Below, one piece after another: positions 3,001 through 32,180 of a DNA stretch of 64,000 bases. The notes beneath the pieces are model-generated. The model did no database searches. It was given only the letters and a program-made list of their open reading frames with translations, and was not told where the DNA came from. Numbering within the stretch: the stretch's first letter is position 1; each line of letters starts with the position of its first letter. Origin of the DNA: Lepidodermella squamata (taxonomy: Eukaryota; Animalia; Gastrotricha); contig JBLDXI010000046.1 of assembly GCA_047495785.1 (NCBI GenBank), positions 1,550,001-1,614,000 of the forward strand, written 5' to 3'. Both the position numbers and the translations under genes were made by a program.

Positions 3001-6000
3001 CGAATAAAAAAAACGGAAATAATTCACAGGATTAATCAATTCGATGAGCAAAAAAACCGATACTCCCCCGGGCACATTTTTTTTAGCCCCTAATAAAGAA
3101 GCACGAAAGAGGACAAGTGGCGATAAACAAATATTATTAGAAGAGAAAAATCGAAGAAATGCAAAAAATATTATATATCGATATAGTATAAAAAATAATA
3201 AGCTTCCATTTTTCGGCAGGCGATTGATAAAAAACATGCGGCTGGCGGCGTCGATTCATAACGCAGCGGGGCCCTCGCGCCGCTTTTTTCCCGCCTGAGA
3301 TTTCATCTATGCCCTCAAACGAATATACGCGTGCAATCGTATTAGCTAATAAAGCAGTTATATATTCGTTGGAGCAATATTTTTCAATAAAAAAGAAGGC
3401 GTAAGAAGAGAAAAATCGCGCTCGCCCCGGAAACAACGTGCTACGTGTCGAATAATAGAATTTATTAGGATGGATGAAGGAAAAATAGGTTAATTTGCTG
3501 ATAGCTTCCGCCAATGCACTCTTGCCAAAAATCACGTACATTTTGAAGGTAAAAATCAGCAAATTATTAGGAATCTAGTTAGCGGAAGATAATCTAGCTA
3601 TATGAAGTTCATAAAATGAGATAAAAAATGATTGAAATGATGAGGCAAGCGCGAATTGACCTAACCATAATATACTTGACGCACTGTAGCGTGGCAAAAG
3701 GTGAGGCGATCGATAAAAACCCTAATAATATGATGAAAAATACCTCTAAGCCTCATTTAAAAGCTATCATAATATTGTGCGAAAAATTTCCTTGTACGCA
3801 ACTAGGCGAAAATTAAATAAGAAAAAAAAAGCGCCTGAAATATATAATAAATATTTTACATCGCATGCACCTTAAAATTTCGTCGGTACTTATTGAGCAA
3901 ATAACAGTTGTCTTTTTTGCAATAATATAATCATAATAGAAAAAAAATTCTACAGACGGGTGGGTTTGAGTGAGCAAATTGCCGGATATAGCGGTTCGTA
4001 CGTGCGATGCCCCGGCGGTTTCTTATACGCGCACACGCGCTCTGCCTCAGGTAAATAAACAACAAAAAGTGCAAATAAGTGGCTTCGAGGCGAGCAGCGC
4101 GCAGAAAAGGCGCGCGGCAGGTGTGACAGTGTCCGAAAAAGTAACAAGTAATTACATGGCGTTAGAGGAGCAATTATAAGCAAGAGGCGAGGTCACTCGA
4201 ATCGTGTCATCAAGGAAAAACGCTTATATATAGCAAAAGCCATTTCGTTTCGTTATAGTATTTGCCTTTGTGTCTGGCACCGGCCGGAAAACGCTCATTA
4301 CACCGATATGACGGCGCGTGTTTAATAAGCCAAGATATATTACCTCGATGGGCTGTAATGAAAATAGCATTATTTCTCGCTCTCTCTCTACACAATTGTT
4401 TATGGCAGTCGAAAGATCAAACAGCGACACGAGTCGAACGCGCAAACAAAAAGCTGCGCTGCGGATGGACATGTGATCCTCGTCGCCGTTTGTTGTTTGC
4501 CGGATGCGAGGAAAGGCAACGCGAGCTTTTAATAACGGCCGCGATAAAAATGAGAAATTTTAACGACAGCTTGAAACGGAAAAGGTGTTTTTCTGCTTGA
4601 CATCATACAAATTTCTGTGATATATTATATTATACGCAAAATATTGCCTTCTTTGTGAGAAATTTTCTCGCGCGCGCTGGTGTCGCATGTGAGATGTGTC
4701 AATCTCTCACGAGGCCGTTGTATATCAAGTGTATACGGCATGAAATTTATTTACATGAAGATGAAGTGAAGATGCCCGCTGCTGCTGTCATTGAGATGCA
4801 GCGCTATGAGATCGATCCTTTTTGAATTTTTCACGCGTGTTTAGCCGAAAGTCATCGACTACAACGCGGCGATCGCTGCTATATATACATTACGAACGAA
4901 TTGATGAATGATATTCTCAATGATACTTTTATTATAGGGCGAGCGAGAGGGGAGCGGGCTGTTGAAATTATTCTAAACACCAACATGTCGCGTGACCATG
5001 TAATTTTAGGGTGGGCTTAGATTTCGCGCTAAAACGATCGGTCACGCGCAGTTATAAATTAGTGGAAAAACAAGTTGAGACAAAACGACCAAGAGCCATT
5101 TCATTCATAACAATAATTATTACTTATGATGGAAAAAAAACCGGCCTTGTAGAGGAACAGAAAGACTTGACGTATAATTTATCCTCAATTCGCAAGGTAT
5201 AATTAAACGTGAAAAAACTGCGCTTCGTAAAAAGCTATCAATGCGGTCACCTTATATGTCAGTCTCGATCAAAAATAGCTCTATTCACCGGCTTTTTTAA
5301 TTAACCCGGCTTTACGACTCAGAGGTGAAATGATGAATATCTTACCGGTGTGTCTCGCCGAAAAAAATGACTAGCCGACTTTGATGAGGGTCCTACTTCT
5401 AGCGAAACAAAATTTTGAATGAATAATCCACCCAAAAATACATTTTTTAATTTTTGCGAATTTCATAAGTAATTTTACAAGCAGAAATCTGATAAAATTC
5501 TGGTAAAGCTTATCATTGCCTTGGAGAAGCTCATCCCTTTGCTCAATTGAGCCGAAGAAAAAAATGTCTTACTTCTATAGCGGAACCAAATTTCAAATAA
5601 TTTTCTAAGATTTCACGATAAATGAAAAAATCCAAATAAATTAAGGCGAAGTTCTCCGTAATTTCTGTATAAAGCCTAACTTGGTACTTGGCAACAGGCA
5701 AATTTGGTTCCGCCTGGGAAAATTAGGAAAATAATTCCATCTCTCAGCCGCTAAACACACTAAACTCTGCTATCGTATGATCTGTATGTTTTTAGAATTA
5801 GTATTAAGGCGGTTAAAAATGGGCAATTTTACGCAAGAAATTGGCTCCCGCTTTGTTACATAAAGAGAAGCCGTTAGTATCGGTATACCTTTTCGCGAAA
5901 ATTGAGTTTGAGTCGTAAAAAATAATATAATTGGCACGATAACACATGATGATGAGGTGTGAGAAAAATTGTCGAAAAATAATAATAATTTGCGTATCAA

Positions 6001-6430: not shown

Positions 6431-9400
6431 TCAGAGAACATTTAAAACCTATCCAAAAGGGAGAAAAAAAATAATTCCGCTCGAAGTAGGTAATCCTAGC
6501 AATTTCAGAGGATCAACTTATGATTCATCGAAAGTTTTATAAATTAATTGAGAAAATAGACGCATCCTATAGGGCTCAGGATGATTTGAGCGTGAGCAAA
6601 CATGAGATTGCATTTGATAGTAATTAGCGCGCGCGATATATTATAGGTGATAACACGCGACGCCATGATGATGGCACCAGTTTTATTGGCGTCATTTAGG
6701 GTGGAAGCTGGCCCGGAGCCGCGTGTTCGCATAGTTTGGGCGTCGGTCTAATTACCTAAACAGAACGTGGTACAAACACGCGAGGAAAATCAGCATTCAT
6801 CTATAACACATAGTTAATTAAAATAACTCGAAATGTAACCATCAGGAAAAACACATTTTTGACGCTTAAAAACCAACATTCACTTCCTGTTGACTCAGCA
6901 AGGATTGGCTTTCTAGGTCAAATAAAGTGCAAAAGATGTCAAAAATAATGTCCCGAAAAATATAGCTATTTATCGCCGGATTTTCGGTTTAGTTTTTGTT
7001 ATTTTGTCTACCTGCGCTGACAAATGGCGATCGGTGAATGGCAATAATATACGATTTCAGGTACGTAGCGCAGCGATGCGATTGGGGACGGGCCAAAATA
7101 AACAATACCTGACTGATTATAATACGCGTCGATCACCATATCGGTCATGCTGAGATTCATGTACAAGCCGGCACAAAAACACATCGACAACGTGTTTTTA
7201 AGCTCTAGCAGCGAACAAACACGCATGAGAAATAAAATAATACAGGTAGGCAGACAGACAGACCCTTTATAGTATCGAGGCATATATTATCAATAATTAA
7301 TCGGCTTAAATCGAGGCGCAGAAAACACGCGATGAATATTTATCGAAACGCACAAGTATTGGCCACTTTTGACAAGGTGTAAACACGCAATTTAGCGCCT
7401 CGGCCTGCGACGGGAAAAAACTTGTCATAAAACGGGCTAAACGCGCAGGTCACGCACTTTGGCAATAAATCGAAGCTTATTAGCATTTAAAGCGTCTAAT
7501 TATATCGAAAATATTCCGAATATTTTGGAAATAAAAGGGAACAACATTTTTCTCGGTAGAGTGGAGAACTTTTTGTTTACTGCCTCGGGGTTATTATTAT
7601 TATATACTACAGCTCGTAAAGTGATCGCGATCCTAGGTGAAGGCCCATTATTAAAGGGTGCGGAAAATCAAGCCGGATGTGCGGCTTTTGTTTAGAAAAG
7701 CTTGATGACGATATGATGATGAAGAAAATAATAATGTAATAGCGGCGAGGTGATAATTGTAAGATGATGATAGCTAAACAAAACAATAACCGCCGGAAAA
7801 TGCTGCCTTATAACTTGTAAATAAAAACAAAATAACCCCGCGTCCTGTATCGCGCCTTTTTACGCTGTGAAAACATGTGTAATTTTCAGGATATAACGGC
7901 CAGATTATATAGCTATATCATAAGACGATGAGCAACGGCTGCGGACAGGCGGAAAAAATAACAAACACTCTCGCGCGAACAATATCGACAATGGAAAAAG
8001 GTATGAATTCAGCAGAGGCATCTCGTTGCTGTTGTATTGTAATAATATAAATAGAGCTATTTTATTTCTATAACGAATTGCCTGCTAACAACATCATACC
8101 TAAAATGGGGTAAACAAATAATGTAAGTTCGGAAGATAATTTTCGTTAGAACAATAGACTTCGAAATTATTGGGCGATGATGTGAAGTGAAACGCATTGC
8201 TAAACTTGGATAAAAATGTTGTCTTCGCTGGCTATAAGTAATGGAATAAAAACGCAAATTCGATTCATTGAAAAATAAGAGCGAATTTAGTACGCTGATG
8301 GGAGAAGAAGAAGAAAAAGCGGCACTCGGCAAGTACAAAGAGGAAATATATTTTATATAGCGCGCTCGTTTTTTCTCTTGTATTTATAATAGTCTCAAGG
8401 ACGCAATGATATATTAGCGCTGTTGAAACTATCGAATTTACTATAATAAATGATAATAATTTTAACAAGATTAAGCAGCGTTTATCTCGGTGATTATCTC
8501 GATGAGCTTAAGGTGTTCGGTGCACTTGCCGAAAGATGATGAGCTATAACAACTTTTTGCCGTAGGGAAAAAATACGCAAAAATCATCATTAAATAATGA
8601 AGCGTATGAAACACGTGATTTTTCTGATATATATCGCTATTTTCTGATGGCATATAATGGGTTTTTTCTTTAGCCCAACTCCCAGATGTATCATATCGAT
8701 ACATGTTTATGTAGAAACGTAATATATCTTGCCGCTATTTTTTGCCACGCGAACATAATCAAATAAAAATGGAGCAAAAAATTATAGTATTGGTGAAAAA
8801 AACCGCCTACTTGATTTTCAGTTCGCGTGTTTTCGAGTGCGTTCATATTTACCTGCTGGGGCTACACAGAAAGTTAGGTCAGGTGGTGACACTAACGGCA
8901 AAAGGTTACCCGTCGTCGTCGCTAAAAGCTGTTACTTATGACACATCATGCAAGTTGAACTCGGCAAATATTCTTTGAAAATATATTATTGTTATATAAC
9001 CATGTGCGCACTGAATTTGACGGGTATCAAATGTAGGTCTTTGCTTCGTTAACCATGAATCGGCCGATGGAAAATGGCCCACTGGGAATTTTTGTGATTA
9101 TTTCGGCTCTATTGTTATATTGGAAGAAAAAAGGCAATAAAAATAACACACACTGTTTGTGAATTCGCGACGGAGAAAACAATGATTTACATCATTGAAA
9201 TCGCAGTTTATTACACACATCTGATGGCGGAGTTGATGAATGTTTGTATTTATATGATGTTGTGTGTAAAATTTTATTAAGCGCCCGAAGCGTTTTTGCC
9301 GTCAGTTTTCGCCGCGCATTGACGTGGCGCATTTTTGCCTCCATATACTATGATTTTTACGAATATACGGCGATGACCGGATGCGCGCTTTATTATACCG

Positions 9401-10056
9401 CAAACACACTGATGCGGCGCCAAATCCCTTCTGTATCGTTTCGTATGACGAGCAGGGGGACGTTGTTTGCTGCCCATCTTTCACATGTGATTCGCCATCA
9501 TTTTGTGCGGCGCCAAGAGACGGCATCAAAAGCATGCGGCATAAATTGAGTTCAAAGCAAAACAATCAACAACCAAATTGATCAGGATAAATTAGGGTAC
9601 AACCCACGCACACCTTCATCTTATCATCTGGGGGTGATGTGTACCAAGTTGACGAATTATTGGTGACCAAGGACCAATTACCTAAAATTGTTGTTGCGAA
9701 CTACCTTAAATTCATTTGACGTAGTTTTCCAACCAGATCAAAAGGAAGAAAAGTTGAATCGCCATGCCCCGAATTTAACATTTCTCCAACTTATTACTCG
9801 GATGTTACTCGAACTATAGAGCTGTCAGTCAAATTCACACTCACCGGACCTACAGAATCAGAGAATCAACTGTAATTGTACAAATTAAACAGCAAGTGAT
9901 GGTTCGGTTATTTTTTTCCGTGAAAAGTTGATTACGGTCACGAGAAATTAAGCAAATTATGACAGAGCGCAACTGAGACAAATTGTTCCCGACGTAGTAC
10001 GAGTAAAGCTGACCCTAGTAAGAGGCGATAGATATTCTTTCCGGTGCAATAAGACA

Positions 10057-12761
10057 ATGAAAGCTGAATTTTTATCGTTAATAAGTCTATTTCAAGTCAA
10101 CCTGATAGGTTCTGCCAAGTATGAGCTGCACATTCTCGTGATGACTACCTTCACGGGTAATGACCCATTCGATGGCACTGCCTGCAAAACCGGCATGCAA
10201 ATCGCGTTCGATGCAGCTAACAGTCGGCCTGACATCTTGGGAGATTACAACGTTAAAGCGTTATACAAAGATGACGGAGCTGGGAATAAAGCTGCTCGTG
10301 CTCTTGTTGAATACATCCGTGATTTCAGTCAAAGCGACAACTCAAGCGTGATCATGTCCCCTCTGGTTGTTGGGGCAATGTTTTCTAGCGGTTGTAAGGC
10401 TATCGCGCCAATGCTTCACCACGAGAATTTGGTCGAGGTAAGTCAGGGCTGCGGGGCGCCTTTCCTTACAGATCGACGGCTCTACCGCAATCTGTACATG
10501 ATGCGATCGACGGGGCGAGTTCTAACCATTGCTCAGATGCATTTTATCAAAGACGTCGGCAGATGGCAGCGAATCGGAATTTTGACCTACGCCGAGAACA
10601 TTTTCGACTACGTAACTGCAACTTTGCTGCAGAAGCTTGCGAATGAAAACGAAGTTCAGGTCGCCCTTTTTGACTACTTCATCGATGTCAACGAAGAAAT
10701 GTTCATAGAAATAAAGGGAAATGACGTTCGAGTCATCGTCTACTTTTGTTCAATGGCTCGGTTGATTTTAAAGTTCTTCTGCCAGTCTTATAAGAAGGGT
10801 ATTACTGGCCCACACTACATCTTCATAATTCTCCCCATTCAATTCCCCGACCCGAAAAGTTTACCCGAAGAATCTCTGTTCGGATGCTCACCTGATGTTA
10901 TCACCGAGCAGTTGAGATACACGTATATGACGGGTCCGGTAATGTTCAACGATGATCCGACTTTGAAAAACGAATTCAGCTACGACAGTCTCGACTTTGA
11001 ACGACGCTTCAATGCCTTGACGAATAACAAGCAGCCACCTGATTATGACTGTCGATTTCTATGCCACGTAAGTCTAAATAATCTTTCAGCCCAATTAGAT
11101 TCGTGCAATGCTATTATAGGATACAGTCATGCAGAGTTTGATCGTGTTAGACAATGCGGACCGGGAGTTGAAAAAGCAAAATCTTTCCCTGGCCAGTTAT
11201 AGGGACTATCCTCGGCTCGTCATGGAAGTTGTCAATAAGTCTGCAGTCAGTGTGGATTACATCGGGTTAAGAATGGGGCGAATGAGGTACAACTCGCGCG
11301 GGGAGGTAGAAGCCGATCTTCAAATGATTGGTCGATGGTCACCCGAAACCTCACTGAATTACGTCAACCTGGTCCGCCAGTATGAAAACACTTCAGGGTA
11401 TGACTACGAAGATTACTGGGTTCAAAACGCGTCTGAAGCGAGGTGGGCAACTGCTGACAACAAACCGCCGCGGGATAAAGTTATCGAAAAGCGAATGGCA
11501 CGGGAGGTGCCGATTCCTTTCTACTACTCAGCAATTGGCATTGCGGCTTTTCTGATCCTAATCCAGATTTTCGTGATTCTTACAACAGTTTTCGCATGGC
11601 TCAAGATTGGCAACGATCTGGCAATGCATGTTTTGCCCCTTACTAAATGTATCGGGTATCTAGGATGCATTATTTTGAACATCTCTGCAATCTTATTCAC
11701 TATGGAAACTCAGCAACATCCCCGCGTGATTTGGGAAGTGCGCATTGTAGCAGCTTTGGTTGGCTGTGCAATGGTTATTGGCTCGTCTTTTTCAAGGGTT
11801 GTCGTAATCTACCAAGCTGTTCTTAGCTTCAACAAGCAGATTCTATCACATAAACGGAGACATTTTCGGACCCTAAATCCGTCGAAATTAGTCATTAATT
11901 ACGGACCGTTCTTCACCTCAGACATGGTTAGGAAACTGGAGAAGCGCAGTGTGCTCACGGCTGCCTCTATATTTTTCCTATCTAACACCTTTATCATGAA
12001 CTGGTTCTTATGGGACCCGATATTCTGCAAATTTGAAAATATCGACGAAGATCCTATTTACAACTATGAAGAGGACACTTCTACAATAATGCATTCTGTG
12101 AAATGTTCCTCGTCGGGCCTAGTTATTTGGTCATCGTTTTCAGGCGCATCTGCACTTATCCTCTTAATACTGAGCTGTTACATGTCAAGGAAGCTTTACT
12201 ACTTAACTTTTTCAATGCGAAAGTATCACGAACTTGGAACGATTTACATCGTCAGCTTGATGATAATTTCGACTTTCGTCGCCGAACTACTCCTGCATTT
12301 TTTGATTGAAGATGAGACGAGGCAGCGAATTGTTATTGCATTTGGCTGTGTTCTTGTATCTGTGATTATGACAGTCGTCAATTTTTTCAGTGGCTGTATG
12401 GATCATCGGCAGAAAACTTTCGCCTCAAAGAACGACGCAGTAGCGACTGTAACAACGACAGCTGTCAGGTAAACATTGTTCGCCAAAATTGTCCGCAGGT
12501 AACCTGTGTTTTTCATCTAGAAGACGAGGTTCGTCCACTCTCACCGCGTCGGCCGTTTTCCAGCAGCCGCAGAGTGTTGGTAATAACAACTCGAATACTA
12601 GTGCCGGGCTGATGCTGCACGTCATTCGATTGGTCGTCAACTCAACGGGAAATTCGACGGCGAACAATTCAGTCAATCCTATCGCGGGAGGCCAGCAGCA
12701 TCTGGAATCTGAAACCCATATCATCACAGCTGATGTATCGGTTATTCAACCTAGTACGTGA
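10057..12761 (+). CDS. Class C GPCR, GABA-B-receptor-like (signal peptide, Venus-flytrap/ANF domain, 7TM, no Cys-rich domain)
   Basis: Exons 10057-11067, 11120-12468, 12521-12761 joined by two 52-nt GT-AG introns. VFT motifs (GMQIAFDAANSRPDILGDY, GAMFSSGC, WQRIGIL, DVRVIV), 'KPPRD' linker, multiple hydrophobic segments and KYHE after TM5. Confidence 0.8.
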
Positions 12762-19830: not shown

Positions 19831-22800
19831 ATGACTTGTAATTTTCTAGAGATGGTATCTGTTATTTTGGCATCACTTTGCCTGTTGTTGGCTGTGTATT
19901 CGCATGCGCAGTACACGCCAGACTGGAAGTCAATTGACTCGCGGCCGTTGCCTCGCTGGTATGACGAGGCTAAAATTGGCATTTTCATCCATTTTGGAGT
20001 GTTCTCAGTGCCAAGTTATGGAAGTGAGTATAATCCCCCAATGGAGCCAAAAGTCCTATTATTTCTTGCCTTTCCCAGGTGAATGGTTTTGGACTGATTG
20101 GGCGGGCGGTGAAGCCGACCTGGTCAAGTTCATGAAGGACCAATAGTGAGATTTTTTAGTAGTTTGAAGGTTTCCATACTAATTTCCGATTTTTCAGCCC
20201 TCCTTCGTTCACTTACCAAGATTTTGCGAAAGATTTCGACGCCTACATGTTTGACCCAGACTGGTGGGCTGATTTGATTAAAGATTCAGGTGCTAAATAC
20301 ATGGCTATCACCTCGAAACACCACGAGGGCTACACAATGTGGCCGTCGAACGTGTCTTTCAGTTGGAATTCGAAGGACGTTGGCCCTAAAAAAGACATCA
20401 TAGGTAAAATTCGACAAAATATTTCTTTAAGCTGGAATACGTTGCGGATTTTTTTCTCTAAGGAATGTTGGCCAACTCGATTCGAAACCGAACTGACGTT
20501 GTGTTCGGGCTTTATCACAGCCTCTACGAGTGGTTCAACCCTCTATACGACCAAGATAGATCGAATAACTATCAAACAAACAGATTTGTCAATGTAATAA
20601 CATTTTTCGTTTTATTCGGGCAATTAGGATAATTTTTTGAAGTTTTCATCCCGGGCAATATTCGGGAGATTTGGCTAGATTTTTAAACTCCCAATGAAAA
20701 AAACCGAATGTTATAATTTTTCTTGGGGAATTCTAGCGAAATGTCTTGTTAAAGAAAACACCCGAAAATATTTCCATTCGGGTTTTTCCGGGTTTCCACA
20801 GGTCCTCGAGGCCTTTTCGCAAAATATTTTCAAATTTAAATTTCTTTTGGTTAATTTTTAAATTTGCCGGAAAAAACCCGGGAAAACCCGAATGGTAATA
20901 TTTTCGGTTACTATCGGGTTTTTTTTCGTTACCAAGCATTTTTCCGGTCATTTATTTGTAATTTTTATGACCTTTATCATCTAGAATTAACTTCGAGTTC
21001 GATATTATCGGTCACCTCGGGTTTACAATTTTCTATAATTTTGTTAGTAAACGTTTCCCCATTTTTGCATGTCAAGTCATGCAGATCATTTTTCTATTGT
21101 TTTTTATTACATTTGTTTTAATTTAGTTTAAGACAATGCCCGAGCTGTATGAGATTATCAATACGTACAAGCCTGAGCTGTTGTGGTCGGACGGCGACTG
21201 GGAGGCGCCGGATTTCTACTGGAACTCGACGGTTTTCCTCGCGTGGCTCTACAACAGCTCGCCTGTGAAAGACACGATTGTGACGAACGACCGCTGGGGC
21301 GACGGCATCATGTGCAACCACGGCGGCTACTGGACGTGCCAGGACCGCTACAACCCGGGCCATGTCGTGGCGCACAAGTGGGAAAACGCGTATACCCTCG
21401 ACAAGGTGTCGTGGGGCTACCGGCGCGAGGGCCTCCTGCAAGACTACCTAACCGAGCTCGAGGTGATTACGGTACTCGCGCAGACGGTCAGTTGCGGCGG
21501 CAACCTGTTGCTCAACATTGGCCCACGCAAGGACGGCCGTATTGACCCGCTCATGGAAGAACGCCTGCGGCAGATGGGTAAATGGCTGCGTATCAACGGC
21601 GAAGCTATCTACGGCTCGCAGCCTTGGATTTTCCAGAATGAAACACACGTAATAATTTTTCTATGAATTATAAATTAGATAAAATTTAGATTAATTTTTG
21701 TACCATTTTCGCATTTTTAGCTCTCATTTACAGACATTTTCAAAATCCAAGTGATACTTTTAAAAACCAGCACGTAATTTGGGTCCCCCACTAAGCAGAA
21801 GGCTTCAAAACAGGGTAAACGTACTAAACAGTCCTCCCAGCAGGCGCTCAGGCTCAGCCTCTGATTTTCAACCAATGGACTAACATGATGGTCAGCTATT
21901 CTAGCTTTTCACACCAAAAATTGAGGAACATTAGTCATGAAAACTCCGCAATGTAGCTCAGACCTCAATTTGGGCAAAAAGTCATTTTTCGAAAATTTAC
22001 CTAAATTCACAAGGTTATGATGAGCCCATATTCAGAAAATTACGCAGAATTTTATTGTAATTAATTCGATTTATTGTTGCATGGCATTTGCACCGCTTTC
22101 TGGGTTTATCCTGCTTTGTGAAGCCTTCTGCTTTGAGTGGGACCCCGAAATTGTTGGAAATTATCTGGTACTAAAACATATAGCTTGTCCCACAATTTGC
22201 GCAACCCTTTTGTAATTTTGCAAATTTTTAAAGAAATTTGACCTAATTTTGTGAAATTGAGCTACAGACAGAATCTTCCATTTTTAGTCCACGATTTTAC
22301 CGAAGAAATTAAAAAGTTACCGGAGAAAACCCCGATGGTAACTGGTTCGGTAATTTTCGGTTTTTACCTGGTTGGATCAATTTTTTCGGATTTTTTTAAT
22401 CCCATTCATAAGAGACATACTTGATTACGATTCTTAAGTCATTTTAGATCATTCTACGATTTTTTCTTCTGGCCATGACATTTCACAGAATGGAGTCAAA
22501 ATAGGAACATTCTTCAATGAGGGAAAATCAGGGAATTTTCTTCGGGATGGGAGTGTTTTCTAGTTTCCGTTCATAAATTTTCAATTTTCCTATTTTCGTG
22601 TTACTTCTGAGTTTTCGAAATATGTATCCTGACCCCAATTGAGCTCTTAATTTTCAAGTCTGAAGTTGAAGGTACGTGGAACGAAGTTACCGTCCGCAGC
22701 CACAACACTAAAAGCCTTGATTCCGAGTATTTATTTCTAATCTTATTTTTCAGTTCAAAGTCCAATTACGATTAAACGGGTTTTAATCCTATTTTCAGAT

Positions 22801-23143
22801 CCCTGTCTGGTACACGGCTCAACAGGCTATGAAGGGCGACCCTGACTCGCCTGTAACTGTCTACGCAATCGTCCTCGCCTGGCCGACGAACGATGAAAAC
22901 CTGTTGTACCTCACCCGGCTATCCCCAACCGAAACAACGACTGTCACAATGCTCGGATATACCAGCGGTGGTGCGTTGCCGTGGAAAATGATCGGCTTCG
23001 AGCCGGGAATTGCCGTTGATTTCAGCGATATTCGATTCGCAGACATGCCGTCGTATGTCGCCTGGGTGCTACGCATTGACAATCTGTCGCCGAAGCAACA
23101 GCAGATTCATCCGCTTGTTCGAGAAAATTACATCTTCAGCTAA
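19831..23143 (+). CDS. FUCA: Alpha-L-fucosidase (GH29), secreted/lysosomal
   Basis: Six exons (~19831-20022, 20079-20145, 20198-20403, 20463-20593, 21127-21648, 22799-23143). Motifs [47 protein letters not shown] (nucleophile Asp), [19 protein letters not shown]. Confidence 0.95.
21781..22146. mobile_element. MITE with ~45-bp TIRs in fucosidase intron 5
   Basis: GGGTCCCCCACTAAGCAGAAGGCTTC...GTAAAC at the left is the imperfect reverse complement of GTTTATCC...GAAGCCTTCTGCTTTGAGTGGGACCCC at the right; a second partial copy lies at ~51030-51320. Confidence 0.75.
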
Positions 23144-23390: not shown

Positions 23391-26300
23391 ATGTCGGCGC
23401 CGTTTCGCGGGTCTTCGTTCGTTGAAAACGACCGCGAGTTGATACTTGCGGCGAGCGAACTGCCCGGATCTCTGCCCGCGAATTCGTTTCACCTGTCGCC
23501 GAACGAGCCTGGCATTCAGTTCGCAAACACGGACTACGACTTTGTTTCGCTGTCGATTCGCACGAATTCGTCCAATTCCGTGCATAGGAAAAGCCGCACT
23601 GAAAGCCACTCGCCCAGTGCGTCGATATCGAACGGCTCGCCAGAGCGGGAAGTCACCAACTTGGACATGTCAGATCTAGTCGAGTAAGCTTTCTCTCAGT
23701 ACATATTCAAATATTTCTGAATACTTGATTAAAAAATCTTCCTTAAAATACCGCAATGAGTGTAAATTTTGGACGAAAGAAGTGTGTTAAGTTTAAAATT
23801 AGGGTCGATTCCGAACATTTTGATATTTAGGACCTAGATGAGGAACAAGATTTCCGATTGATCTGCAAATTTTGGCGATTTTGACCTGATTTTTCGGCAA
23901 TTCAAGACGTTTTGCATAAAGTTGGACAGTAATTTTCGCAACATTTTCGCACAATAATTTCATCGTAGAGATTGGCCCATAGATCCACAATAAAGATAGG
24001 ATTAACCAATTTGAATTTCCAAGGTGACTTTTTTATTTGGAGCTTGGTTAGCTAATGCATGTCCCATTTTTAAATTTAGCAACTTTTTGCAATAAATTCA
24101 ATCAATTTTTTCAAATTAAAACTACCCAGAGAATCTCACATTTTTATTCCGCGATCGAAGAATATACAAATTTACCGGAGAAAACCCGGAAACCCCCGAT
24201 GGTAACTGGCGAAGTAACATGAAACCCGCGAACTTTTATTTTCTTTTCTCGAACCATTTTAACTTAAAGCATCGGAACCATCGGAATATTCAATTTTTAT
24301 ATTTTAAATAATAAGCATCGGAAAAGTCGCCTTTATATTTATTCTTATTTTCCGATGTGTTAAGACATTATGTTCGATCAAATAAGTAACTTGTTAATTT
24401 CGGAATATCTTAACACCGTCGGAATTACCTCAGGGCGTGACAATGCGAGCTGAACGAGCGTTAGTAGGTCGTGCACCTTGTACCACAATTTGATCCGACT
24501 CTCTGTAAACAAAGGTAAAATTGTCTTACGACCGTCGGAAAGAGGCAAATTACTTACGCCCAAACCATTTCCGCGCGTTGAACTTCACATGAAAATAGCA
24601 CATCAATCGTAGCACTGCTCCCTTGCCAAAGATTGTTTCGATCGCAGTAGTAATATAGCCAGCGCCATCTGCCATTACCGCCATCGGAAGATAAAGGGGC
24701 ATAAACTTTCTCAAACTACGAAAAATGACCTCGTATGCTCTGCCGTTTTCGTTGCTCGCAACTCTGAGTAAAATGGGGTGAAACTTGCGGTTTTTGTCAC
24801 TTGAGCCGCCAGGCTTCTGAGTTCGTGATTCGCACCAGGCACGAAGCTCGGCTGTTCCGAAAGAGCTTGAAAGCGCGTCAGGACCAACAGTTGCCATTCG
24901 ATGTTTTCTCTTCAACTGTTGCTTCAAATTGGCGACTTGCCTCGTTGTCAGCTTTGGATTGTCTTTGATGAGCCGCTCCCTGATGTACTTGGGTGGATCA
25001 TTGATATGATCCAGCACATATCGCCTCACCTCGGCTGTTAACACGCTTGTCGAATTGATTGGATGCACATGAGCGCCGCCACACGAAAACACGGCTTGGT
25101 CAGGAGACCATTTGAGTACACCCCGGTGGGGGCAATCCTTTGAGCCTGACTTCCGATGCTTACAGACGTAATAGCATGTTTGCTTGTTGAAACCGCTCTT
25201 CGTAGTGTCAATCCAGAGAATGCTGTAGTTCCGCTAGACATGGAATGTAATGCCGAATGGCAAAGCTTCGAACAAATCAAACTCAAATTCATCTGTCGGC
25301 TTCGGGTCGGCAATAAAGTCATTTTCATCGTCAACCAGAGCAGGGTCATCTTCATCCCAGTCCTGATCTTGATTCTCGACCGACTGCCCATCGATAGCCT
25401 CGTCGGAGTCCTCAAATTCCTCTACACTTCCGTCAGATTCGTACAATTTCAAAAAGTTCATGTTTCAAATGATGAAAATTGGGAGAATAAATTAATGTTT
25501 AATAAATCGTTCATTGCTGCTTCAATTTAGCGCGAATTCCGACGGTTTAAGGTAGTGTTACGATACATTAGTCGCGTGTTCCGATGAAATAAATCAAAAC
25601 AAGTCATTCCGATGGTTTAATTTACTTTCCTTGCGATTTTTGTATTTCCGACGCTTTAAGTCAAAATGGTACGCGAAAAGAAAATAAAGGTTCGATGATA
25701 TTAGCTGAGTCCTAACTGGCTTGGTAATTTTCGGTATTTTGCCCAGTTTGTTTAAATTTCATCGGATTATTTTGATCCCATTGACGAGTTCCTTACCTGA
25801 TTACTGTTCTCGCGACATTTTGAATTTTTTTATGATTTTTATGGCAGCTGGCAGTGAGATATAGCGTGTCCCATAAGTAACGCAATCAAATAAAATACAC
25901 GGAAGATGGTTCAGAAACTCTGAAATTAGAGACGAAGCAGCATCTCATTGCCCCAAATTTCTTAGAAAAATTCATAAAATCACGAGAATAGTAATCAAGT
26001 ATGTCACTTGCTGATGGGAATAAAAAGTCCGGAGAAATTTGGCCCAACCGGATAAATTACCGAAAATTACCGAACCAGTTGCCATCGGGGTTTTCCGGGA
26101 TTTTTCCGTAAATTTTTTATTTCTTTGGGTAAATCGCGGATGAGAGATAGAATATCCCTAAGTAGGGTTCGTTGAAAAAAATTAGTTCAATTTCCTACAA
26201 AATATTGCTAAATTGAAAAATAGGAGCGCATTTTAGAGTTTTTAAACCCTCTTTCATGCATTTTATGGGACACGCTTTATTAGTGACCGAATTAGCCATT

Positions 26301-29300
26301 TTTGCACCCGAATTTATTCAATTTTTTCAACCAAAATTTATGTAATTTTTTGTTTTAGTAACGAACTGAATTCTCAAGCGTTGGCGTTGTGCAAGCGATA
26401 CGTGCTGAAACACTATTTCCGGCTATTGCAAGTCATCGCCTGGGAGCCGTTCGCCTTCTGCAACTGCTGCTACTCGTGCTCGAACCAGAAGCTGTACGGC
26501 GACGAGACGTCGGCATTCCACCGCTTCTACATCGGCGCCATCAACCTGCTCTACCCGATCCTAGTCGTCGCCTTCCTAGTCTACTCCTACGTATTCGACG
26601 TGATCGGCTGCCAATGGGTGGTCATGATCGCCCCATTTTCACCCATCGGACCAGCTATCATCAACTCATCCGCCCTACCGCCTGAAAATTTAACAACCAC
26701 CCCATTCGGCGTTTTATACAACATGGAAACAACAACCAAGGTAATCCCATTCGGCCCGGTTATTCAAAAGGAAGAATGCAGTTCGCACTGGCTGACGACG
26801 TACGTAGTGCCGAACATCCTCCACTTCGTCGCCTACGTCATGGGCTTCGTCTACTTCCGCCTCATGCGTTCTGAACAGCTGTACGCGTTGATTGAACGCG
26901 TGTTCCTGAACTCAGCCCTCGTGAAAAACCGCACCGTCATGTCGTTGACTCGAGTGATTCGAAAACTGCGCATCATTTTATTGGCCTCTTTCACCTGGGT
27001 CGTTTTAGCCACCGCTCTGTACGTATTTTTTCTAACCGCCTTCCCCGACCATTCTTACACAATCATCCACGACGCGTTGCGCCTCGACGACAACGTGTAC
27101 TATTTTATCCTCGCCCTGCGCTCGATCGGCTACATTCTAGCGAATCTAGTCACGCTGACGGTTGTCTTCAACTTTGTCGTGCAGTGCGAGATGCTGTGCT
27201 TCTACTTCGAGTTCATCTTCCACCGCCTGCGCGAGAAGGTGTGGCTCATGAGCGATGCGTTCAAGCACGTGTTCAACGTGGCGGCGTTGGCTCGCCAGAT
27301 CAACTTGTTCCAGTCGCATCTAACGTCGGTTGTCATGTTCAAGCTGCTGATAACAACGACAATCGGCATTATCACGCTGTTTCAGAACAAACAAGACGAC
27401 CCAGTGGTGAGTTTCCGCTATCAATTTCCTCAACTAGGCTTATCTTATATATCGTGCTTAATCATGAGAAAAAATGGTTTGAGTACCGGATCTGAACATG
27501 TGAGCCTCGAACCTTTTTGGAGGTTCCTGGGGTCGTTGGGATCGCGGCTTCAAATTCCTAATTTGCCTTATTTTTTCACGATTTTAACTTATTTTTAACC
27601 GTAAATTACTGTCAGCCCAGTGGAAAAATATTCGACCAAGTTGAGAAGTATGGTTGAAGTCACCTAGTAAATGAATCTCAAATTCCGAAATACGGAAAAA
27701 ATCTATTAATATAGGACTTTAAAACAATTTTTTCAGGTTTTGAAATTTAAATTTAACTAGAAATTTCGAGTGTTGAAGAAAATGAGAATTGCTGGCTTTG
27801 AGGAATATCTAATATCCGCTGGCGAGTCATCGTTCAGTTTCGGTAACGATGGAAAGCGAAACTCAGTGTTAATTAAATTAAATTGAATTGAAATTGAAAT
27901 TTGAAATTTTTTCGAAAAAACTTGGAAAAAATCATAGAAATTCATGAGATGCGCGTTAATAAGCAAGTCCAGGGCCATACAAAAGCTGAGCTGGGCCAGT
28001 TTTATCTTCCTAATTTAGATTCGGTAAATATGTTCGGTAAATAAAAATATGGAAATGCTCGGTAAAATGAAGTTCGAATTTTAGGAATTTTCTCAGGCTT
28101 GGAATAAAATCGTTTGAGTGGGTGCGAAAAGCATTGATGAAATCCTTGAATCGCTAAAAGAAATGCTACTATCCCTCAGCGACCTTCAGGAAAACTCCTA
28201 ACCGTTCATTTCCGAGGTCGAAACCAATACATATCGTTTAAACTAATTCGGGAAAATATCCACCTTGAAGAAAATTTACAAAAATCGCCGAAAAAGTTAT
28301 GTTAAGTTCCAGAGAAATTATCTCTGGTAAAACTCAATTCCCTGCGGCCTAATTCTGACGTCATGGTAGAGAGTGAACGGCTTCGAAAAAAAATCAGCTG
28401 TAATTTAGGTTCAAGTAAACACGGCCTGATTGCGCACTCGCGGCAGCTGATTATTCTAATTACACTGAATAGCGGATCGTTTTTTAGGCAAATTTTTTCA
28501 CTCAAAAACAACAACGTGTAACAGTCGGACATGTGCACTGAACAGCGCGTAAACAGCATAAAAAAAACTGCCTGGCACCTGGTCAAACTGCGTCATAGTA
28601 AGCGTTGGCATAAAAATACTAGGCTGAAACCATATAAAACAGGCGCATCGTTTTCATAGTTTTCATCGTTTTCCAAAACTTGAATTTTCAATATTATAAA
28701 ATGAATTTACTTCAAATTTCCGTTATTTACTTTGCCGCATTTGCCTCCGGTAATGCATTTGCTGCAGTACCTACGATTGGCGGGTGTCAAATGTTCCCGG
28801 CTGATAATATCTGGAACACCCCGATCGACTCGCTACCCGTCCATCCTAAATCCGCGACCTACATGGCCACCATCCAATCCATGTCAGGCAACAACTACCT
28901 GAAAGCTGACTTCGGCACTGTTTGGAACGGAGCCCCAATCGGCATTCCGTTCAACGTCGTCAACGGGGCTCAGGCGAAGTTATCCCTAAAATTCGACTAC
29001 GCCTCTGAAAGCGACGCAGGGCCGTACCCGATCCCGCAGAATGTGCTGATCGAGGGCGGCACGAACGCTCCGTTGTCCGACGACCGCCACGTGCTGCTAG
29101 TCGACAACTCAACCTGCACGCTGTACGAAATCTACAACTACCGACCCCAGGCGGACGGGTCGCTTCAAGCCGGGTGTGGGGCGATCTGGAAACTGGGCTC
29201 AAACGCACTGCGCCCTGATACTTGGACGTCGGCGGACGCGGCTGGTCTGCCGATTCTACCCGGGCTTGTTCGTTACGAGGAGGTGGTCGCCGGTGAGATT

Positions 29301-31163
29301 GCTCACGCTATTCGATTCACCCTGCCGAAAACGCAGCGAGCCTACGTGTGGCCGGGCCGGCACTACGCGTCGTCGATCACCGACCAGTCTTACCCGCCGA
29401 TGGGGCTGAGATTCCGCCTGAAATCGACCTTTGATATCACGCCGTTTTCGCCGAAAGTGCAAGTTATTCTACGGGCTTTCAAGAAGTACGGCCTGCTGCT
29501 AGCGGATAACGGCTCGAAGTGGTTTGTTTCGGGCGTGCCGAATTCTAACTGGGACGATAACGATTTGCGAAATCTAGCCAAAGTTCTCAGCTCGAATCTC
29601 GAGGTGGTCGATGATTCACTGCTGATGGTGAGTAAGGACTCGGGCCAGGCCAAACAGTCGTCAGCTAGCACGTCGACTTCATCATCCCAAGCAACTGCTT
29701 CTACGACTAAATCAGCGACTTCTACCACTACTACTACGAAATTATCGACTACGATGAAATTGTCCTCCACCACTACCAAGAGGAAATAATTAGCAAAATA
29801 ATTTAGAGTCATAATTTTGTGATGATTACACCTCAGTTATAATCCTGGTGAATTATGTTAATGAACTTGTAATATTATCTAATCTAATAGGTTTTAAAAT
29901 TGTCGAAATTATTTTTTCCGTTCTGTAAATAATTAAGCTGGGCTACGGCTATGTAGAATATTTGATGTGTTTATTGAATAAAAAATGAATTTATATGATT
30001 TTAAACAAGTTTTTGAAGAAATTTTTTCATGTCGTGGGCATGAATTTAGTTGAAATTTCATCTCGTTTTTAACTAATTTTGTAATATTGAAAAGGTATAG
30101 GAACCCTTAATTCACCCTAAATTGGGGGTTTCAGCTCTAAGATGACCCAAAATATGGCTTTTCGGGTTAACCATCTTCCTTAAAATCTCAATTTTTTTGC
30201 GTAATTATTTATTTAAGAGCATTTATCCCACAGTTGAGTTGGTTATAAAAAAAATTGTCAGTGAGAAAAACCGTAACAACAAGTCATGATTATTCGGTCC
30301 TGTTCAGAATTTTGCGTCAGTATATGAGTTGAGCCTCTATCGATTCCCAAAAACAAGTGATTTTTCCGGTATCTAGCCAATTTTTCAGTTATATCATCGA
30401 TAAATAACGTGAAAAGAAGAGAGGAAAGGGGATCGCACCGAGGTTCAGAGAGTTAAATCGGAAACTAAATCGTTTACCATAACAGAGGCTTGACAGTTTG
30501 TGTACATGTTGGCTATCATTTTCAAAAAATATCTTCACCAAAAAACGATGATTCATCAAATCTAATGCGCTGCTGTAAGTGACGAAGGGTTTTCTTAAGA
30601 AATTTGAAAATATTGTTTCAGGTGGATTTTTTACTTTTTTAATTGATTAATTTTCAATTATTCTGCTTGAAAAAATATCATGAATAATTACATCATGTGC
30701 ATGTCTTAAGAAATTTGAAAATATTGTTTCAGGTGGATTTTTTACTTTTTTAATTGATTAATTTTCAATTATTCTGCTTGAAAAAATATCATGAATAATT
30801 AATTTTTGTCATGAATAATTTATGATTTCGCATCTTGTGCAGATATGGGCGTATAAAGGCGCATTTCCCGTCATCTGGTTCATCCCGGTCGTGTACTGCT
30901 TCGCCGAATCGGCGCGCCTGTTCACGTACAACCGCACGCTGATCAACCAGGCGCTCGAGATGCGCGTGTTCGGCTACGCGGCCGCCAGCCCCGCCGAAAT
31001 CGACTCGTTCATCGCGTTTCTGCGCGCCGCCAACGTCCGCACCAAGCTCTTCCACGTCGGCATCCGGCCCTCGTACCTGCTGATCATCGCCTTCCTACTA
31101 GCATTTGCCCTCGTGGCAATGCTGCAGCTGGACATTGTTTCATTTGGCTACCTAAAACTCTGA
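23391..31163 (+). CDS. Multi-pass membrane protein, gustatory-receptor-like / 7TM ion channel (GrlHz-like), ~550 aa
   Basis: Phase-compatible exons 23391-23683, 26359-27406, 30843-31163. No signal peptide, Ser-rich N-terminus, LCKRYVLKHYFRLLQVIAWEPF, ~7 hydrophobic helices, C-terminal EIDSFIAFL...KLFHVGIRPSYL + final TM. Family recalled from sequence pattern, not searched. Confidence 0.65.
24050..26235. repeat. Foldback/MITE-like element with long imperfect inverted arms, interrupted by the MULE insertion
   Basis: 24058-24210 plus 25713-25835 is approximately the reverse complement of ~25960-26232 (CCCCGATGGTAACTGG...GGTAATTTTCGG vs CCGAAAATTACCGAACCAGTTGCCATCGGGG). Related arms at ~22190-22460 and ~20860-20930. 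Confidence 0.65.
24211..25712 (-). mobile_element. Internally deleted Mutator-like (MULE) DNA transposon with frameshifted transposase remnant
   Basis: Minus-strand fragments 25461-24550 with MULE core (VMADGAGYITTAIETIFG...LMCYFHV); ~50-bp subterminal inverted repeats (24229-24277 vs 25648-25694); 8-bp flanking duplication TAACTGGC (24203-24210, 25713-25720). Confidence 0.8.
28633..28639 (+). promoter_or_regulatory. TATA-box-like element upstream of the nested bacterial-type gene
   Basis: TATAAAA ~62 nt upstream of the ATG at 28701; could be chance in AT-rich DNA. Confidence 0.35.
28701..29789 (+). CDS. Intronless secreted protein of a bacterial-type uncharacterised family plus Ser/Thr-rich tail, nested in Grl-like intron 2 (HGT candidate)
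   Basis: 362-aa intact ORF; signal peptide MNLLQISVIYFAAFASGNAFA; motifs FPADNIWNTPIDSLPVHP, SDAGPYPIP, DRHVLLVD...CTLYE, WTSADAAGLPILPGLVRYEEV, HAIRFT, PPMGLRFRLK, YGLLLADNGS, recalled from widespread bacterial hypothetical proteins; AATAAA at 29977-29982. Confidence 0.85.
   Translation: MNLLQISVIYFAAFASGNAFAAVPTIGGCQMFPADNIWNTPIDSLPVHPKSATYMATIQSMSGNNYLKADFGTVWNGAPIGIPFNVVNGAQAKLSLKFDYASESDAGPYPIPQNVLIEGGTNAPLSDDRHVLLVDNSTCTLYEIYNYRPQADGSLQAGCGAIWKLGSNALRPDTWTSADAAGLPILPGLVRYEEVVAGEIAHAIRFTLPKTQRAYVWPGRHYASSITDQSYPPMGLRFRLKSTFDITPFSPKVQVILRAFKKYGLLLADNGSKWFVSGVPNSNWDDNDLRNLAKVLSSNLEVVDDSLLMVSKDSGQAKQSSASTSTSSSQATASTTKSATSTTTTTKLSTTMKLSSTTTKRK
30593..30801. repeat. Near-perfect tandem duplication (~98 bp x2, period 111)
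   Basis: TCTTAAGAAATTTGAAAATATTG...ATCATGAATAATTA at 30593-30690 and 30704-30801. Confidence 0.9.
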
Positions 31164-32180
31164 TATTAACCCAAAAATCTATATATATTATATTATATTC
31201 TACTCCGCCTTAAAAATAATATCAAAATTATGCATGCCGTAAAAATATTATTCTACCGAAAAATATACTACCCAATTTTATTGTTCATGAGCAAGAAATG
31301 ATATCTTCTGTGATTTTTTTCGAACGATGCCAGTATTATACCAAACGCAATCCAGCATGTTGAGCTTTCTTCCAAAATATTCGTCTTCCCGGAAGGCGAG
31401 CTCTTCTTTTTTCTCATCGAAAACATTTGTGAGCGAAATTCCAGGTGCTGTTTTTGTTGTTGTCGCAATTGCGAGTGCGACATTTTTTTTCCGGCCCGAT
31501 GCACGGCGGCTATGAAGAACTATATTCGATGCAATAAAGCTCTGTATACGGTTTGTATATTATAGCGTTGTTATCTTGTTGTCTCACAGGCGTTTGTTTA
31601 CACTGCACGGGCTCAATAATTGTTATCTGAGCTATAAAAAGTTGTTGGGTGCAGAGGGGTGAATGCGAAAATGTGGCTGCATCATGTACCTTTTTATTGG
31701 GGCAAACCCATGATTAAGCTTCCGGGTTAAATCGGAATGAAATAAGGACAGTCAACTGAAAATGTGAGTTCCGATAACATATTACGCAAATACTGCTCAG
31801 AAATCGAAGAAGAAGAGAGCGGAATCTTCGGAAAGCTCGAGAAAATGTAAGCCTAGATTCGCATTTGTTTGATTAGGTTGGCGAATGAAGATATGGAACA
31901 TAGAAAAAGGTCCAAGATTTCGGAAGTTGTATGATGGCCATGCGACGAGGTACGGTACCGTTCAGAGGGAAAACATATTCGAAGCTTAAAATTAGCTTGC
32001 GCCTTTTGGCTAACTGGGTATGGGCAAATAAGGGGCAGTTTTATACTCTCAATTGCCAAAGCATGGGTTTCCAGCTTTTTTTACCCGGTTTTCAAGCAGA
32101 TGTCCTCCTGAAACGTGTCACGGATATTTATTATTTTCATCCATTTCAGAGGGAGAAAAAGTAAGAGAATAACTATGCCG

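Follow-up and report, generated by a model that had tools for sequence, protein, structure and literature searches.

Can a gene of bacterial type that lies inside an intron of an animal gene be a working gene of that animal, and if so, what might its product do? The question is raised by a 64,000-nt stretch of DNA from the gastrotrich Lepidodermella squamata (GenBank assembly GCA_047495785.1, contig JBLDXI010000046.1, positions 1,550,001 to 1,614,000 of the forward strand), which was analysed at its full length and is referred to here as the window; all coordinates are window positions unless stated otherwise. As a first reading made from the sequence alone had proposed, an intact open reading frame (ORF) of 362 codons, free of introns, occupies 28701-29789 on the + strand, with its ATG at 28701 and its stop codon at 29787-29789. 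This ORF is present as a single copy within the window and lies in a 3,436-nt intron with GT..AG ends (27407-30842, +) of a multi-pass membrane-protein gene encoded on the same strand. We propose, with a probability of about 0.8, that a bacterial secreted-protein gene was inserted into a then-short intron of the animal membrane-protein gene and was domesticated there.

Origin and integration of the nested gene

The sequence-only reading had assigned the encoded protein to a widespread, uncharacterised bacterial family on the basis of four motifs. All four are found in the ORF, as FPADNIWNTP, DDRHV, SADAAGLPILPGL and ADNGS, and the family is indeed large: at least 7,998 matches were present in a set of 5.8 billion proteins, the named ones coming only from bacterial metagenome-assembled genomes, and an exhaustive HMMER scan gave 8,864 clusters at 50% identity. 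The matches are strong (E ~1e-117 to 1e-121 over residues 21-320), with the best single-domain matches 55-63% identical to the nested protein and no cluster exceeding 63%. Encoding loci in GTDB species genomes, of which there are at least 598, are spread over Acidobacteriota, Chloroflexota, Actinomycetota, Betaproteobacteria, Planctomycetota and other groups, together with one archaeal bin, and the Atlas clusters that share its fold are 92-100% Bacteria. No eukaryote-labelled relative was present among the 270 best matches, and a scan of Joint Genome Institute metagenomes for orthologues returned none above 60% identity. Searches of Pfam, NCBIfam and PDB sequences with the protein gave no match, Atlas searches returned only the family itself, with all members annotated as hypothetical proteins, and our search of the literature found no paper on this bacterial family.

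The bacterial relatives carry signal peptides, and fusions to FN3, Ig-like, SLH, dockerin, ricin-lectin and other extracellular modules are frequent; modules of the five named kinds are characteristic of glycan-active proteins outside the cell. The family domain also occurs in tandem, with three copies in the 909-aa protein P0125 and two in several others (the entries noted were P0125, P0130 and P0224), and it is found inside giant proteins of 2,762-2,917 amino acids (aa). A fungal origin of those relatives that carry a Kre9 domain was considered and rejected, as their contigs are compact and prokaryotic.

Phylogenetic trees of 81 rows and 104 rows were built, the latter rooted on a phage homologue that is described below. 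In both trees the window protein nests within bacterial diversity, as a tip inside the bacterial radiation, and from the homology searches and the trees we take the nested gene to be bacterial in origin. Its neighbour is a Thermoflexus (Chloroflexota) sequence, and because support for this sister relationship in the Shimodaira-Hasegawa-like approximate likelihood ratio test (SH-aLRT) falls from 83 to 25 when more rows are included, the trees do not settle the donor; an affinity to Chloroflexota is weakly suggested.

These results also bear on the possibility of vertical descent from an ancient eukaryotic gene that most animals have since lost. Sampling of the host lineage is sparse, with only four relatives of the host gene found, so absence from other animals may in part be an effect of that. 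Against vertical inheritance stand the lack of eukaryote-labelled relatives among the best matches, the position of the gene as a tip within bacterial diversity, and its lack of introns despite an intron-rich genome. In addition, bdelloid rotifer and mollusc proteomes are present in the database, as the search with the neighbouring fucosidase demonstrates, and gave no close match to the protein, and a syntenic relative lacks the gene in its orthologous intron (see below). We regard vertical inheritance as very improbable.

Physical integration was assessed with public sequencing runs compared over 27000-31200, all of them as contigs, from which RNA strand, expression level and 3' end are not readable. 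Run X1 is DNA from organism A, run X3 is from organism A in another study, and run X2 is from organism B (2015). A 6.1-kb metagenome contig, L081, carries the closest relative of the host gene and served as an outside comparison. The intron and the exons that flank it are placed as follows.

26426-27406 (+): exon 2 of the host multi-pass membrane-protein gene, 5' limit approximate; placed by an ORF, 60% aa identity to L081 and high X2 depth that ends at 27406
27407-30842 (+): host intron with the foreign gene; placed by a contig join in X3, loose ends in X2 and an L081 intron at the same codon position
30843-31163 (+): exon 3 of the host gene; spliced to exon 2 in X3 and X2, 65% aa identity to L081

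The X3 contig connects 27405 with 30842, skipping 3,436 nt, and loose X2 ends at 27406 and 30842 both continue into the opposite host exon. Splicing of the host gene thus runs across the nested gene, as had been suggested from the sequence. X1 covers all 30 bins of 27000-31200, and its unitigs, overlapping by 30 nt, lead from exon 2 through the intron into the ORF and from there through the intron into exon 3. Depth in this run is 82-148 over the ORF and 62-113 over its flanks. Several X1 variants stand at half depth (57 of 114), which indicates two haplotypes with the nested gene on both. Host-level depth, tiling unitigs and presence on both haplotypes bear out the earlier claim that a foreign gene is integrated in this genome.

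The same data address whether the ORF could be bacterial contamination or a misassembly, lying outside the animal genome. Its ~60% identity to bacterial proteins and the GC island formed by its core might suggest as much, and X1 is possibly the assembly's own data. However, the ORF depth equals that of the host, heterozygous variants occur at half depth, unitigs cross both boundaries between intron and ORF, and the flanking exons are spliced together in two other runs. The intron contains no remnants of bacterial neighbour genes, and no known bacterium is more than 63% identical. The gene also has a TATA box and a template-switch cap site, 36 nt ahead of the ATG, and an AT-rich signal peptide of eukaryotic type, features that are described in the next section. 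Contamination is, in our judgement, hardly credible.

Comparison with the metagenome contig bears on when the insertion took place. Gene order on L081 matches that of the window, with an alpha-L-fucosidase gene followed by the membrane-protein gene, and aa identity to the window host exons is 60-66%. Its intron at the same codon position is only 54 nt long (L081 positions 3347-3400, GT..AG), and no homologue of the nested ORF is present on the contig. This absence from the orthologous intron of a syntenic relative indicates that the foreign gene, together with ~2.3 kb of AT-rich surroundings, arrived after the lineages of the window and L081 split.

Transcription, secretion signal and selection

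The nested gene and its associated signals, with the evidence on which each is placed, are listed here.

28633-28639 (+): TATAAAA box of the nested gene; from the sequence, 32 nt upstream of the mapped 5' end of the complementary DNA (cDNA)
28665-28700 (+): transcription start and 36-nt 5' untranslated region (UTR), with no upstream ATG; from the start of an X2 contig after GTATCAACGCAGAGTACATGGGG
28701-28763 (+): signal peptide, residues 1-21, of eukaryotic type and with no basic n-region; from the sequence and its AT-rich composition
28764-29651 (+): core domain, residues 22-317, bacterial-derived as judged by homology, conserved positions, an AlphaFold model and a GC island
29652-29789 (+): Ser/Thr-rich tail (45 aa, 29 of them Ser or Thr) and stop codon; from a residue count
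29977-29982 (+): AATAAA; from the sequence only, with X2 depth 0 at 29820-29960

Depth in X2 is 237-545 over the host exons, 75-145 over 28692-29819, which spans the ORF, and 0-8 over the rest of the intron; by this pattern the run behaves like cDNA. An X2 contig that starts at 28665 is preceded by GTATCAACGCAGAGTACATGGGG, the 3' portion of the SMART template-switch oligo (PMC8579666) with one additional G. The position of the oligo identifies the 5' end of a + strand mRNA, 32 nt past the TATAAAA element and 36 nt before the first ATG. Given this cap site and the ORF-specific depth, the ORF is made as its own unspliced mRNA and not as a retained intron, in agreement with the earlier claim of an expressed gene. 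Since X2 was chosen by its likeness to the window DNA, this claim applies to a close relative. The sequence-only reading had also named a TATA-like element and a polyadenylation signal. The former is present as noted above. The AATAAA is present as well, but its use as a poly(A) signal is unsupported, since the X2 depth of 0 at 29820-29960 means that it is probably not the signal used. The gap in depth could instead come from a diverged 3' UTR in organism B.

The signal peptide claimed from the sequence was recovered as residues 1-21, which have a hydrophobic core of 13 residues, an A-F-A cleavage motif and no basic residue. Its GC content is 0.35 over codons 1-20, with 0.30 at third codon positions (GC3); the intron flanks have a GC content of 0.29-0.36 and the core 0.57, and the conserved core corresponds to a GC island at 28800-29700. 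Homology to bacterial proteins begins at about residue 21-24. The AT-rich, intron-like composition of the signal peptide and this starting point of homology suggest that it was probably recruited after transfer, from local sequence, so that the animal would secrete the protein. As a marker of foreignness GC3 itself was uninformative, as the host exons are as GC3-rich as bacteria. At the other end of the protein, 29 of the final 45 residues are Ser or Thr, as the first reading had described. In prokaryotic homologues such as P0028, a Thr/Ser-rich linker follows the core at the same place, and the tail may be a remnant of the donor's linker. In the animal it would be O-glycosylated and mucin-like.

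Selection on the ORF was examined by comparing variants among the window, the second X1 haplotype and X2. Synonymous changes make up 20 of the 24 ORF variants listed and non-synonymous changes the other four, three of which fall in the signal peptide; within the core (residues 22-317), 20 variants were listed and one of them alters an amino acid. The ratio of non-synonymous to synonymous substitution rates (dN/dS) among the variants listed, from 271 synonymous and 815 non-synonymous sites, is ~0.07, a value that is only rough because it is drawn from those listed. In addition, 97 positions show at least 90% conservation among 96 bacterial relatives; the window protein retains 91 of them, against a bacterial median of 95 and minimum of 63. 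The nested gene is under purifying selection.

The insertion could be real and the gene still be a neutral passenger, transcribed as noise and with no role in the animal. Its function is only predicted, its expression is seen in a single cDNA-like run, and the codon usage of the core, compared by relative synonymous codon usage (RSCU), is nearer to the bacterial pool (r = 0.65) than to a host proxy (r = 0.41). The median correlation between bacterial homologues and the host is 0.15, and the core is thus intermediate in codon usage, with the reservation that the host proxy is noisy. A passenger is harder to reconcile with the excess of synonymous variants among those listed, the near absence of amino-acid changes among those listed in the core, and the conserved positions that have been kept. 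It is also harder to reconcile with the TATA box, signal peptide and defined cap site that the gene has gained, and with an X2 depth over the ORF that is within ~2-4 fold of that of the host exons. We consider a neutral passenger improbable.

Several points weigh against our proposal of a domesticated bacterial gene. X1 is possibly the sample behind the assembly, in which case its support is not independent, and the linkage of the ORF to the host is read from overlapping unitigs; no long read spans the region. X2 is called RNA by guess only and its organism is recorded under a different name. The roughness of the dN/dS value given above counts here as well.

Predicted fold and candidate function

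An initial structure model built from 39 similar sequences, with a predicted local distance difference test (pLDDT) score of 76.8, was replaced by an AlphaFold model of the core only, built from 97 sequences (pLDDT 96.2, predicted template modelling score 0.93). Foldseek scores lay below the level usual for unmatched models, and the whole fold is therefore without a close solved relative. No row of the structural ranking is significant by Foldseek, though the ranking departs strongly from chance, as 17 of the 23 top-ranked rows are double-psi beta-barrel proteins. Six of these are MltA-family lytic transglycosylases (GH102, a family that includes PDB entries 3czb, 2g6g, 2pnw, 7esj and 2pi8), whose alignments take in both halves of the model and cover 121-182 residues, or 172-182 in the longest. 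The other barrel rows are five expansins, two cerato-platanins, kiwellin, YuiC, PA4485 and a Streptomyces papain inhibitor. Nearly the full length of their small barrel domains can be aligned with model segments ~29-67 and 180-285, and model residues ~68-170 form a separate beta domain.

[quoted passage not shown] Members of this family are the best structural matches to the core model, which would resemble them in a barrel formed from N- and C-terminal parts, an inserted beta domain, and conserved residues on both sides of a cleft. The core may therefore be viewed as a putative two-domain enzyme in which a double-psi beta-barrel is split by an inserted beta domain, with an active site that would lie in the cleft between the two domains. 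The sequence offers no link between MltA and the nested protein. Three results from this part of the work are to be added to the points counted above against our proposal: Foldseek gave no match in the PDB at E ≤0.001 with either model, hhalign gave no signal against E. coli MltA (probability 0.2%), and no conserved gene neighbourhood was found across 80 bacterial loci. Re-alignment of the top Foldseek matches added nothing, and for MltA and 3D domains Pfam gave nothing at E up to 1 and a profile search of PDB sequences likewise gave nothing. The only second neighbour cluster among the 80 loci was rejected as an antisense-ORF artefact.

A sequence-level relative was found in phages. The PHROGs family phrog_17388, annotated as "minor tail protein", matches residues 179-283 of the window protein and also matches two bacterial relatives, with E values of 7e-5 to 7e-7. 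A tblastn search of phage genomes returned one record, gp29 of Gordonia phage Confidence, a 671-aa protein annotated as "hypothetical" (L164, positions 8515-10527) and encoded just after a cassette of lysin A, holin and lysin B. The homologous region of gp29 spans its residues 161-429, and hhalign aligned the core with gp29 over 243 columns at a probability of 98% (E 2.7e-13). The two share the motifs FxADxIWNTPI, HA, VWPA, PMG and D-x-(G/S), and on this evidence we take gp29 to be a true homologue of the core domain. The phage protein differs in its 26-27% identity and in its length, which includes other parts, and its own function is only predicted. Among the invariant charged residues of the family, D128, H202 and D269 are kept in gp29 whereas E118, H130 and R239 are not. 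The three charged residues that this distant homologue shares are the candidate catalytic residues of the core.

The sequence-only reading had proposed a metal-binding or enzymatic role. That role remains a guess; the fold and the phage homology point towards a glycan-acting enzyme and away from a metal binder. Taken together, the fold ranking, the phage homology and the extracellular fusions of the bacterial relatives suggest action on cell-envelope or other polysaccharide. That the protein is a secreted enzyme or binding protein active on glycans in general seems somewhat probable from the model and these associations. A lytic role directed at the bacterial cell wall in particular is a tentative idea, and we lean against it. 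If the protein is an enzyme, it would cleave or loosen bacterial cell-envelope or dietary polysaccharide outside the cell, in digestion or in antibacterial defence. The most far-reaching interpretation is that the core would represent an undescribed class of extracellular polysaccharide-acting enzymes, with an MltA-like split barrel and a catalytic set of its own (Asp128/His202/Asp269). Such a class would be present in thousands of soil and water bacteria, would occur in an actinophage tail protein, and would have been co-opted by an animal as a secreted bacteriolytic or digestive enzyme. This interpretation is possible but unlikely.

A domesticated gene need not encode a glycan-cleaving enzyme, and the product could instead be a non-catalytic, expansin-like protein for wall loosening or for binding, or some other type of enzyme, for example a peptidase or an amidase. 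Many of the barrel matches are non-hydrolytic (expansins, cerato-platanins, loosenin and the papain inhibitor), and the invariant H130, H202 and R239 are not typical of MltA. Set against this, the longest alignments, of 172-182 residues and spanning both domains, are to MltA enzymes, many of the invariant residues are acidic, and the phage homologue sits in the tail and lysis region of its genome. We are doubtful of a product that does not cleave glycans, although it is a possibility to be taken seriously.

Precedents and the surrounding sequence

Transfer of a bacterial gene into an animal genome is an event of a type already known; the family concerned here is different and unnamed. The closest precedent is the transfer of bacterial rlpA, which encodes a double-psi beta-barrel protein, to the pea aphid genome (PMC2662799, PMC9116674). 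Aphid rlpA is a bacterial gene for a cell-wall-related protein of barrel fold that entered the genome of an animal, acquired a signal peptide of eukaryotic type and is expressed. The nested gene resembles it in these respects, its barrel fold and cell-wall relation being predicted. Aphid rlpA differs in having gained introns and in acting in the bacteriocytes that house symbionts, whereas the nested gene is intronless, lies within an intron and has no known symbiosis. The nested protein also differs from the aphid rlpA family in having no match to the Pfam DPBB_1 model. Bacterial secreted enzymes have been domesticated by other invertebrates, such as the cellulases of nematodes (PMC8826503) and cases in arthropods (PMC4943190), and these resemble the nested gene in their eukaryotic promoter, signal peptide, expression and purifying selection. 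Unlike them, the nested gene belongs to a family that has no known activity, Pfam model or solved structure, and it is nested in the intron of another gene.

The locus provides a well-documented transfer: the orthologous site is empty in a relative, the cap site is mapped, the signal peptide appears to derive from host intron sequence, and there is evidence of selection. It is a good example both of a bacterial gene becoming a working animal gene and of an intron receiving a foreign gene without harm to the host gene. A second point of interest is the bacterial family itself, which comprises over 8,800 clusters at 50% identity and has neither a Pfam model nor a solved structure nor a known activity. 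Selection has maintained this family in an animal, and a phage tail-region protein is homologous to it.

The host gene itself had been labelled Grl-like in the sequence-only reading, and this label was not confirmed, as Pfam gives no recognition of a gustatory-receptor-like protein. No Pfam match to the 7tm_7 or Trehalose_recp models was obtained for the host exon or for its full-length relatives, which are 30% identical. The gene encodes a multi-pass membrane protein with four database relatives, none of which has a name. Upstream, at 20247-23143 (+), lies a multi-exon alpha-L-fucosidase gene of animal type, whose best named relatives are from molluscs (60-62% identity) and a nemertean (58%), with bdelloid rotifers at 54-56%. 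Between the fucosidase and membrane-protein genes, at 24550-25415 (-), lie ORFs in which a MULE transposase domain is weakly recognised (E 3e-4). The equivalent interval in L081 is only ~400 nt, and this stretch looks like a lineage-specific transposon insertion.

Three further observations concern the intron. Across 27388-30586, X2 contains ten scattered joints of low depth (3-5x) that connect opposite strands ~100 nt apart; hairpin artefacts of the library or assembly, formed on traces of pre-mRNA or DNA, are the probable cause. At 30100-30400, X1 depth rises to 536-645, 5-6x the ~100 around it, with several loose ends, and this stretch is a multi-copy genomic repeat. Just upstream of the 3' splice site of the intron lies a perfect direct duplication of 98 nt, with copies at 30593-30690 and 30704-30801 that are 111 nt apart from start to start.

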